Source: Octopus sinensis
Lineage: Eukaryota
NCBI RefSeq assembly: GCF_006345805.1
Contig: NC_043006.1
Span: forward strand, 58,156,001-58,220,000
Length of the DNA stretch: 64,000 nt
Direction: 5' to 3'
Made by a program: the position numbers and the translations under genes. The notes below the pieces were generated by a model. It ran no database searches. It saw nothing but the letters and a program-made list of their open reading frames with translations, and had not been told where the DNA came from. This document shows positions 47,201-50,200 of this stretch, in pieces. Numbering within the stretch: the stretch's first letter is position 1; every line of letters starts with the position of its first letter.

Positions 47201-50200
47201 GCACCGCCCTAAAGAAACTTTTAGGCGAAGAAATCGATCCCAGGACTTTTTCTTTGTAAACCTAGTACCTATAGTATCGGTTCTTTTGCCGATCCGCTCA
47301 GTTACGGGGCCGTAAACACAGCAACATCGGTTGTCAAGTGAGGTGGGAGGACAAACATAGTCGTAGACACACACACACACACACACACACACACACATAT
47401 GTATAATAAATAATAATATATATAATATATCCATCTATCTACCTATTTATCTATCTATCTATATATATGTATGTATGTATATATATATCACCGTGACCGT
47501 GACCAACCAGACCATCAGATGTTGCTACACATCGCTGGTCACAATGCGTTCGCATTGTTTTAGCCTCCGAATGACGCCACCCCGCTGGCTAAGCGAGCAG
47601 GCCAATATATATATATACACACAATATATATATATATATATATATATATATATATATATATATATAGTATATATATATATATATTATATATATTATATAT
47701 ATATATATATATATAATTAATTAATAGGGTAAGGTGAGAATTAGATACTAATTTAATAGTATATCTATTCAACACCAAGTGGCCTAGTGCTCCGAGAAAC
47801 CTGGATTATTATAATATTTTATAATATATTATAATATTTTTACAAAATAAATATAAGAGAGTGGTCACTATATGGCTCACTCTAGCACCAGTTAATCCAA
47901 AAGGTTTCGACCACAAAAATACATGTTTCCCATGAAAGTCAGTACGTGTGGTCGAAACCTTTTGGATTAACTGGTGCTAGAGTGAGCCATATAGTGACCA
48001 CTCTCTTATATTTATTTTATATATATATATATATATATATATATATATTATATATATATATAATATATATATATATGTATGTATATATATATATATATAT
48101 ATATATATATATATATATATATATATATATATATATATATATAATATATATATATATACACACATACATGCATATATGGGCGCAGGACGTCACCAACGCC
48201 GCAAATAACATGAAATACGTAAAAAAAAAACGAGGAGAAAACAGGACAAGTAAACACTGAGAATGGACTCTTCATCAGTTGTCGGTTGTCCTCCTACTCT
48301 TCATTTTGAGCAACATCGACAATATGAGTCTTCAAAGACAGTTGCTTCCATAAATTCTAAAATAAAATTTAGGATTTATGGAAGGTCAAAGTTGGGAACA
48401 AAAAAAATGACAGTGGAGACATACAAGTAAACCGAACGAAAACAAACATGGAGGGTCATTAGAGTAGAACGAGAGGAAAATAGTGAACACTGGGAGAAAC
48501 TTTTTTTGAAAAGAGAAAAGATAGAAGAGAGAGAAAAACACTTCCGTTCTTTTTAACGGCTGTGCAGGAAAAGAAAGATGTTCACGTGAGGAAAAGAAAG
48601 ACGGACGATGGTCACGTGTGGCCAACGAGAGAGAGAGAGAGGGAGAGGTAGGGAGGGGAGGGAGAGAGAGAGGGAAGGACGGAGAAAGACAAATAGAAAA
48701 CTGTGAAGAAGGGAGCGAGAGTAAAAGGGAATTAGAGAAGGATGGAGGAAGAAAACAGTATAGAGTAGAGAGTCGCATCAAAAATGTGAAGATAAAGGAG
48801 CAAGATTCGGGGGATTTTCATCAGGCCTAATACAGCAAGCCGTCACATGCGCTATCATCTTGATGCATTGTAAATATGTTTTCTTTATTTCTACGCAGGT
48901 ATATGCAACATTCTTCTTCTGTGGTGGAATTCTTGCAATTATTGACTCCAACAGTACGGTTTCAAGTCCAAACATGGCACCATTGGCTATTGGTTTGCTT
49001 CTTACAGCTGTTGTCAGTTCTTATGGCTTAAATGGTGGTCCTGCAGTAAACCCAGCATTAGACTTGGGACCACGAATTGTCTTGTTGCTTGCAGGTTGGG
49101 GAGTAGAACCATTTACGTAAGATTCTTAACCGTATCTCTTTTATTGTATGTTCATATGTGTATGCATAGCTCTTCCGCTCCCTCTCTTTCATATGTACAT
49201 GTATGTATATACATCTACATGTGTGTGTGTATGTGTGTATGTGTGTGTGTGTGTGTGCGTGTGTGCGTGTGTGTGTGTGTGTGTGTGTGTGTTGTGTGTG
49301 TGTGTGTGTGTGTGTGTGTGTGTGTCTATTCCTTTACTTGTTTCAGTCATTAGACTGCTGCCAGGCTAGGGCACTGCCTTGAAAGAATTTAATCGAACGA
49401 ATCTACTATAGTACATTTTTCATGCCTGGTACATATACTAAGCGACGGGGACGTAAACACATCAACACCGGTTGCCAATTGGTGTTTACAGTCACAAAGT
49501 TACAAACACACACACACACACACACACACACACACACATATATGGTGGAGCACTTCGTCGGTCACGACGACGAGGGTCGCAACTTATACGAACTACGAAA
49601 CAACTTACTCATGAAATGAACGTGCAAGTGGCTGACCACTCCACAGACACATGTACCCTTAACGTAGTTCTCAGGGAGATTCAGCGTGACACAGAGTGAG
49701 ACAAGGCTGGCCCTTTGAAATACAGGTACTACTCGTTTTTGCCAGCTGAGTGGACTGGAGCAACGTGAAATAAAGTGTCTTACTCAAGGACACAATGCGC
49801 GGTGGGGAATTGAACTCACGACCATGCGATTTTGAACCGAATGCCCTATGCACTAAGTCACGCCACGCGCCTTGACTTATATATATGTATGTATATATAT
49901 ATATATATATATATATATATATAATATATATATATATATATAAAAGACCCCCTTCGGTCATGAATGACCATGGATTGCACCTAGAAAGTTACCCTCCTAG
50001 ACACAAGTCCGGGCAAGGTTGTTATGGAAGGCTAGCAGTCGCCCATGCATACCAGCCTCCCCTCTCCACGCCACCAGTGTTATCCAAGGAAAGACAAAGG
50101 TCGATACAGCTTGGCACCTGTGACGTTGCAACTCATTTCTACAGCTGAGTGAACTGGAGCAACGTGAAATAAAGTGCCTTGCTCGAGAACACAACACGCA

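Follow-up and report, generated by a model that had tools for sequence, protein, structure and literature searches.

Two arginine-less aquaglyceroporin lineages in cephalopods: a Ser/Val/Pro/Leu selectivity filter encoded in the genome of Octopus sinensis

Background

A seven-exon gene on the forward strand of the window, as we call the whole stretch of 64,000 nucleotides analyzed here (Octopus sinensis, contig NC_043006.1, positions 58,156,001 to 58,220,000; all coordinates below count from its first base unless another locus is named), encodes a protein that is an aquaglyceroporin by descent and by fold, and that is devoid of the aromatic/arginine filter of this subfamily. In a canonical aquaglyceroporin the filter arginine donates hydrogen bonds to the permeant molecule and charges the extracellular constriction, and two aromatic residues act as a hydrophobic wedge. 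Beyond the NPA motifs, no functional residue of the aquaporins is more conserved than this arginine; it governs the width and the hydrogen bonding of the pore and repels cations. To our knowledge, very few natural channels exist without it. The window gene is not a lone oddity, given that it represents one of two paralogous arginine-less lineages present in cephalopods, which we refer to as lineage A (the window gene and its orthologues) and lineage B.

Results

The selectivity filter was read from HMMER alignments of the window protein with the solved AQP3 and AQP10, which are free of gaps between the first NPA motif and the filter position in transmembrane helix (TM) 2, and also between TM5 and the second NPA motif. 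The Y212T and Y212F mutants of AQP3 present in the PDB fix the column of Y212, and the octopus residue opposite to it is Pro196. The filter obtained in this way is Ser51/Val187/Pro196/Leu202 (S/V/P/L), distributed as follows:

H2: octopus Ser51; AQP3 F63; AQP10 G62
H5: octopus Val187; AQP3 G203; AQP10 G202
LE1: octopus Pro196; AQP3 Y212; AQP10 I211
LE2: octopus Leu202; AQP3 R218; AQP10 R217

The first-pass annotation, made from the letters of the window alone, had arrived at the same four residues by a manual alignment with AQP3, and the two codons that it singled out, TTA (Leu, 49058-49060) after the second NPA and CCT (Pro, 49040-49042), are both read in frame 1 of exon 5. It had also stated that adenosine-to-inosine editing cannot restore the arginine, and this is correct: editing of TTA gives TTG, which still encodes leucine, and the remaining filter codons (TCT, GTC and CCT) have no adenosine.

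In a MAFFT alignment of 258 homologues, LE2 is arginine in 247 of them, as it is in every one of the 93 canonical sequences of a second alignment (A4). Leucine or isoleucine at LE2 is confined to the cephalopod arginine-less proteins among the 258. The commonest filter is W/G/Y/R (126 of 258), and the combination S/V/P/L is restricted to octopod proteins. Other residues at LE2 are rare: lysine (NPAKD) occurs in CAL1539801.1 of Lymnaea stagnalis (P0130) and in a Logan contig (P0154), and histidine, glycine, valine or threonine in single sequences each (P0136, P0225, P0255 of Saprolegnia, and P0197). The Lymnaea NPAKD protein adjoins the group of the cephalopod and AQP10-like proteins in the tree described below (54% bootstrap).

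A second charged position also differs in the cephalopod proteins. Residue 147, at the start of TM4, is aspartate in 96% of the 93 canonical A4 sequences and asparagine in both cephalopod lineages. The acidic residue at this place is missing in all four independent lineages that have no basic residue at LE2 (the cephalopods and three others), and it is missing as well in about 22% of the homologues that contain the arginine. The change D147N may represent a charge co-evolution with the loss of the arginine, which these counts do no more than suggest.

Regarding its family, the window protein matches the Pfam MIP profile (PF00230) with E = 4e-45 and 154.7 bits (cut-off 25), over residues 9-246 and profile positions 5-222 of 222. 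The PDB sequences that match at E <= 1e-20 are aquaglyceroporins in 16 of 16 cases (AQP10, AQP3, AQP7, GlpF, TbAQP2 and PfAQP), and the closest solved relatives are AQP10, AQP3, AQP7 and GlpF (E = 1e-49 to 1e-36). An AlphaFold2 model built with 99 homologues reached a predicted local distance difference test score (pLDDT) of 86.7 and a predicted template modelling score of 0.84, and only the C-terminal tail is predicted to be disordered (pLDDT below 50). Superposed on AQP3, AQP7, AQP10 and GlpF, the model gave target-normalised template modelling scores (TM-scores) of 0.90-0.93 and root-mean-square deviations (rmsd) of 1.5-2.1 A. The architecture of the MIP superfamily, that is, six TM helices and two NPA half-helices, is recognized both in the motifs and in the predicted fold. 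Both NPA motifs, at residues 71-73 and 199-201, are preserved, and the signatures of the aquaglyceroporins are kept: Asp203 after LE2 (NPAxD), Arg207 four positions on, and the TM6 sequence WFWVPIVGP. Its affinity to the aquaglyceroporins was observed by sequence and also in a neighbour-joining tree, where it nests in the metazoan members of the subfamily. Its fold, its pair of NPA motifs, NPAxD, its long C and E loops and the conserved glutamate of TM1 are also those of GlpF, AQP3/7/9 and PfAQP. In contrast, where the canonical proteins have an aromatic residue at H2, glycine at H5, an aromatic residue at LE1 and arginine at LE2 (Trp/Phe - Gly - Phe/Tyr - Arg), the octopus protein has S51/V187/P196/L202 and shares none of the four.

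The segment 48899-49116 (+), where the deviant filter residues of loop E are located, is exon 5 of the gene; it is free of stop codons in frame 1 and is flanked by an AG acceptor and a GT donor. To locate the six further exons, an aquaglyceroporin was used as tblastn query and the splice sites were then inspected. Every border in the resulting chain is GT-AG, and its translation is exactly that of XP_029642181.1 ("aquaporin-9 isoform X1"); exons 1-6 also agree with XP_029642182.1 ("aquaporin-8 isoform X2"). The exons are:

Exon 1, 23144..23221, + strand: from ATG to Gly26; TM1 motif AEFLGT, with Glu18 at 23195-23197; GT donor; translation matches XP_029642181.1
Exon 2, 29009..29129, + strand: end of TM1, loop A and TM2; H2 is Ser51 (TCT, 29081-29083), opposite AQP3 F63 and AQP10 G62
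Exon 3, 33392..33529, + strand: loop B, the intact first NPA (Asn71-Pro72-Ala73, 33403-33411), then TM3
Exon 4, 39960..40066, + strand: loop C and start of TM4; Asn147 at 40061-40063
Exon 5, 48899..49116, + strand: TM4-TM5 and loop E; Val187 (H5, 49013-49015), Pro196 (LE1, CCT, 49040-49042)
Exon 5, continued, 48899..49116, + strand: second NPA at 49049-49057, Leu202 (LE2, TTA, 49058-49060), Asp203 and Arg207
Exon 6, 54700..54851, + strand: TM6 and start of the C-terminal tail
Exon 7 (isoform X1), 59123..59232, + strand: C-terminal tail and stop codon

The C-terminal tail of isoform X1 is kept in Argonauta. The terminal exon of isoform X2, which encodes DSATITRL, was looked for at 54852-64000 and was not found in this part of the window; therefore, isoform X2 presumably splices to an exon beyond base 64000. 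A possible core promoter (TATAAAA, 23104-23110) lies 40 bp 5' of the start codon, and a possible polyadenylation signal (AATAAA, 59472-59477) lies 240 bp past the stop codon. The RefSeq names of the two isoforms, aquaporin-8 and aquaporin-9, are automatic and mutually contradictory, and they mask the peculiarity of the filter. Membership in the AQP8 or AQP9 groups, as these names would imply, was rejected, given their automatic origin and that no match obtained is of the aquaporin-8 type.

An orthologue was identified in Argonauta hians (GAB1603450.1), which is 79% identical and has the same four filter residues. The sizes of the seven exons are equal in the two species except for a difference of one codon in the last exon, and it is on the identity and on these matching sizes that the orthology rests. 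The codon for the filter valine is GTT in Argonauta and GTC in O. sinensis, and that for the filter leucine is CTA and TTA, respectively; these synonymous changes indicate that the amino acids of the filter have been maintained in spite of nucleotide turnover. The Octopus vulgaris model (P0004), which is mis-spliced elsewhere, has an identical exon-5 peptide. The assemblies of O. sinensis, O. vulgaris and Argonauta hians, which are independent of one another, thus agree in the NPALD peptide. The pairwise ratio of nonsynonymous to synonymous substitution rates (dN/dS) between O. sinensis and Argonauta was 0.09-0.12 by four methods, with dS of about 1.2-1.6. By parts, the channel core and exon 5 had a ratio of 0.06 each, and the C-terminal tail one of 0.43. 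Given this strong purifying selection, we consider that the window gene is functional. The first-pass annotation had described the locus as an aquaglyceroporin gene with an intact open reading frame (ORF) and intact splice sites, and as what looked like a functional divergent channel. Its identity agrees with the Pfam match, with the AQP10, AQP3, AQP7 and GlpF matches and with the predicted fold; its integrity agrees with the GT-AG chain of seven exons that reproduces XP_029642181.1; and its functionality agrees with a dN/dS of about 0.1, far from the value near 1 that would have spoken against it, and with the persistence of NPALD in the other two octopods.

From the Argonauta locus to that of Octopus there is a marked difference in size. 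The window gene spans 36 kb in O. sinensis (23144-59232) and 10.4 kb in Argonauta hians (L001 10001-20394), and the lineage B gene spans 78 kb in Octopus and 22 kb in Argonauta; from these spans it follows that the introns of Octopus have expanded about 3.5-fold at both loci. In Argonauta the gene has LicD as its upstream neighbour and a DUF4495 fragment downstream; LicD gave no tblastn match in the window, which is expected from an octopus locus about 3.5 times larger.

The second arginine-less lineage, which the first-pass annotation had not noticed, became apparent from profile searches. In an exhaustive HMMER scan of 1.84 billion cluster representatives, no other protein was more than 50% identical to the window protein, and the top non-octopod match (P0126, 43% identity) also has NPALD. 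The lineage B proteins revealed by the profile search are listed with their first and second NPA-type motifs:

P0289: O. sinensis "aquaporin-9-like", on another chromosome (CM016861.1, L013 10001-87815); NPV / NPAID
P0290: Argonauta "aquaporin-9" (L014 10001-32325); NPV / NPAID
P0126: Sepia esculenta transcripts (L002-L011); NPT / NPALD
P0291: sample SRR27666075 (L012 143-940); NPG / NATLD

Many RNA sequencing runs, several of which are the published larval transcriptomes of Sepia esculenta, contain transcript contigs (2.0-2.4 kb) on which the coding sequence of P0126 is unbroken; thus, lineage B is expressed in the larvae of a cuttlefish. Of the two lineages, B is the more derived: it shows a deletion of one residue before LE1, and the motifs GPR, AGWG and WFW have been lost. 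Its filters are A/I/C/I in octopods and about V/I/F/L in Sepia, and its dN/dS is 0.06-0.11 (Octopus vs Argonauta, 158 codons). The first motifs NPV, NPT and NPG recall the unorthodox type of aquaporin, yet the tree derives lineage B from aquaglyceroporins.

For this neighbour-joining tree, Kimura distances were computed over 272 columns of 30 sequences, and 300 bootstrap replicates were run. Lineages A and B cluster together (98%), and the pair is sister (71%) to a clade of "AQP9/10-like" proteins of Argopecten, Mytilus californianus and Batillaria, whose filter is G/G/Y/R. Lineages A and B also have derived states in common at columns whose conservation elsewhere is 85% or more, namely D147N, T210L, G29V/A, G187V/I and R202L/I, together with the replacement of Y111 by a non-aromatic residue and of Y196 by another residue (the codon of Leu210 lies at 49082-49084 of the window). 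These shared states support the grouping independently of the tree. Both lineages probably arose within the molluscan "AQP10-like" clade of aquaglyceroporins. Since lineage B has members from octopods and from decapodiforms, it predates the split between these two groups. No decapodiform orthologue of lineage A was found in our searches, which may reflect a loss or incomplete sampling.

In the remainder of the window, a 364-aa ORF at 8184-9278 (+) carries the C-terminal half of a reverse-transcriptase domain (PF00078, E = 1.6e-14) and a poly-Lys/Arg end; it is probably a truncated non-long-terminal-repeat retroelement, and some 14 kb separate it from the start of the gene downstream. The long ORFs at 2961-3530 (-) and 13524-13937 (+) gave no Pfam match. 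The introns are rich in simple repeats (49220-49325, 48007-48158, 48630-48700, 37521-38707 and 62265-63718). Exon 5 is closely preceded by a (TA)n run and a GA-rich tract, and a (TG)n run of 53 units starts about 100 bp past its donor. Arrays of the ATGT/ATGTATGT type, at kilobase scale, yield spurious 'CMYV' ORFs.

Discussion

The known channels with which the window protein can be compared are of two kinds, those related by descent and those that resemble it in the filter. Among the former, its closest sequence relatives are human AQP10 (6f7h, E = 2.6e-49) and the molluscan AQP9/10-like proteins (44-46% identity), which already have a small residue (Gly) at H2 in place of Trp/Phe. In contrast to the cephalopod proteins, these relatives keep glycine at H5, tyrosine or isoleucine at LE1 and arginine at LE2 (G/G/Y/R, G/G/I/R).

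Among the latter is TbAQP2, which transports drugs. Its filter is I110/V249/A259/L264, and the solved structure shows a wider and more hydrophobic pore (PMC11088622); the substitution L264R abolishes the uptake of pentamidine (PMC11088622, PMC12857728). The octopus protein has in common with TbAQP2 (PDB 8jy6, 8ofx) the aquaglyceroporin fold, leucine at LE2, valine at H5 and the small size of the LE1 residue, and its model superposes on TbAQP2 with a TM-score of 0.92 and an rmsd of 1.8 A. It differs in that the identity is about 30% (E = 1e-27, against 1e-49 for AQP10), in its NPA/NPA motifs, which are NSA/NPS in TbAQP2, and in having serine instead of isoleucine at H2. The octopus filter is thus arginine-less in the manner of TbAQP2 except for H2, and the two proteins do not form a group by descent; by analogy, the window protein may work like TbAQP2 without being a member of its group. 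For human AQP11, the filter T61/V82/V204/A213/L219 is hydrophobic, with no distinct constriction and about 4 A wide (PMC12857728). In human AQP11 and AQP12, as in the octopus protein, the second NPA is followed by a leucine, and AQP11 agrees with the octopus protein at both H5 (Val) and LE2 (Leu). In contrast, the first motif of AQP11 is NPC, and the protein has seven helices and assembles as a trimer (PMC12857728). Among the PDB sequence matches at E <= 1e-20 there is no chain of AQP11 or AQP12. Of the features of the unorthodox AQP11/12 type, the window protein shows the leucine and shows neither a deviant first NPA nor affinity to AQP11/12. Given the identity of about 30% with TbAQP2, the absence of an AQP11 match at E <= 1e-20, and the position nested in the molluscan aquaglyceroporins, the resemblance to TbAQP2 and AQP11 is convergent. 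The descriptions of both proteins given in the first-pass annotation are accurate (PMC11088622, PMC12857728).

We favour, with moderate confidence and by analogy with these solved channels, the reading that the window gene encodes a conducting channel with a widened, uncharged and hydrophobic filter and an altered selectivity. The wider hydrophobic filter is suggested by the fact that TbAQP2 and AQP11, the two solved MIP proteins with a leucine at this position, have such filters. The replacements of Trp/Phe by Ser and of Tyr by Pro cut the bulk of the filter, that of Gly by Val at H5 adds some, and with that of Arg by Leu both the charge and the donors of hydrogen bonds disappear. Glycerol, water and other small neutral solutes would still pass, and bulkier or amphipathic solutes would be admitted. 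The barrier to cations would fall with the loss of the electrostatics of the arginine, and the intact NPA pair would stay as the main barrier to protons. As to the origin of this filter, on the simplest reading the TM2 aromatic residue was already lost in the molluscan 'AQP10-like' clade from which the lineages come; a cephalopod ancestor would then have replaced, once, the arginine together with the glycine of H5 and the tyrosine of LE1, and a duplication into lineages A and B would have followed before the split of octopods and decapodiforms.

Several observations weigh against this interpretation. The bulk added by the valine at H5 could narrow the filter or form a hydrophobic gate. When lineage A or lineage B is run singly, it joins the same molluscan clade in about 50% of the bootstraps, and because the tree is a distance tree and both branches are long, their clustering could be due to long-branch attraction. 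Finally, no Logan transcript contig that encodes the lineage A gene was found in the protein collection; this absence says little, given that the other two octopus aquaglyceroporins are also without contigs.

An alternative that we regard as unlikely is that the protein is an ordinary facilitator of glycerol and water, in which the changes of the filter are tolerated and alter the rates without a physiologically meaningful effect on selectivity. The retention of both NPA motifs, of Asp203 to Arg207 and of WFWVPIVGP would agree with such a role, as would a predicted fold indistinguishable from that of AQP3 and AQP7, and TbAQP2 conducts glycerol though it is arginine-less, according to literature cited in PMC11088622. 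However, three of the four filter positions depart from residues that are at least 90% conserved in the canonical relatives, strong purifying selection keeps the new states fixed in both paralogues, and in the solved analogues the same change of Arg to Leu accompanies a clearly different pore (PMC11088622, PMC12857728).

Slightly more doubtful is the possibility that the protein conducts poorly or not at all and has another role, with the Val/Pro/Leu ring as a dewetted gate; it could then act inside the cell as an 'unorthodox-like' channel, regulate heterotetramers as one of their subunits, or serve in adhesion or as a scaffold. A ring of hydrophobic residues that offers no hydrogen-bond donors, and to which the H5 valine adds bulk, could indeed dewet, and lineage B is also without GPR, AGWG and WFW in loop E and TM6. 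AQP11 and AQP12, which have the same leucine, are intracellular, and AQP11 was first reported to be without apparent transport function (PMC1475587, PMC12857728). Nevertheless, lineage A retains NPA/NPA and all the motifs that scaffold the pore, AQP11 and TbAQP2 have wide open pores with comparable filters (PMC12857728, PMC11088622), and it is the core that is most constrained (dN/dS 0.06, against 0.43 in the tail), as expected if conduction is under selection.

An artefact, either an assembly or sequencing error at the leucine codon, a pseudogene or a mis-spliced model, is highly improbable: in spite of the inconsistent RefSeq names aquaporin-8 and aquaporin-9 and of the clearly mis-spliced P0004 model of O. 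vulgaris, NPALD is found in three independent assemblies with the leucine encoded by different codons, and the intact ORF, the GT-AG borders throughout, the matching exon sizes and a dN/dS of about 0.1 led us to reject pseudogenization and assembly error.

Conclusions

In the molluscan aquaporin literature, the malacoglyceroporins and an "Aqp3-mol3" clade that includes cephalopods have been reported, and a change of Arg to Lys in a mussel aquaporin was rated "the most striking finding". Our search of the literature on the filters of cephalopod and octopus aquaporins and on malacoglyceroporins found nothing on arginine-less aquaglyceroporins of cephalopods; the pair reported here is previously undescribed in the searchable literature. 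This result corrects the misleading automatic names aquaporin-8 and aquaporin-9. A clade of two paralogues without the arginine, maintained by selection in a large group of animals, is a natural experiment on the role of this residue, and it offers a set of natural variants for structure-function work, with the filters S/V/P/L, A/I/C/I and V/I/F/L and with NPA motifs that are intact or degenerate.

We tentatively propose, as a possibility rather than as the probable outcome, that the coleoids have kept, since before the octopod/decapodiform split, two paralogous wide-pore uncharged channels for solutes that the canonical aquaporins exclude. If this is true, the candidate solutes would be ammonium and methylamine cations, bulky organic osmolytes and amphipathic compounds; ammonium, methylamines and organic osmolytes are an attractive guess for animals that are ammonotelic and rich in trimethylamine N-oxide. 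It would also be a case, among metazoans, of convergence with TbAQP2 and AQP11, and would add a new transport route to the nitrogen or osmolyte physiology of cephalopods. The two lineages may thus indicate a solute pathway that has gone unrecognised in these animals.

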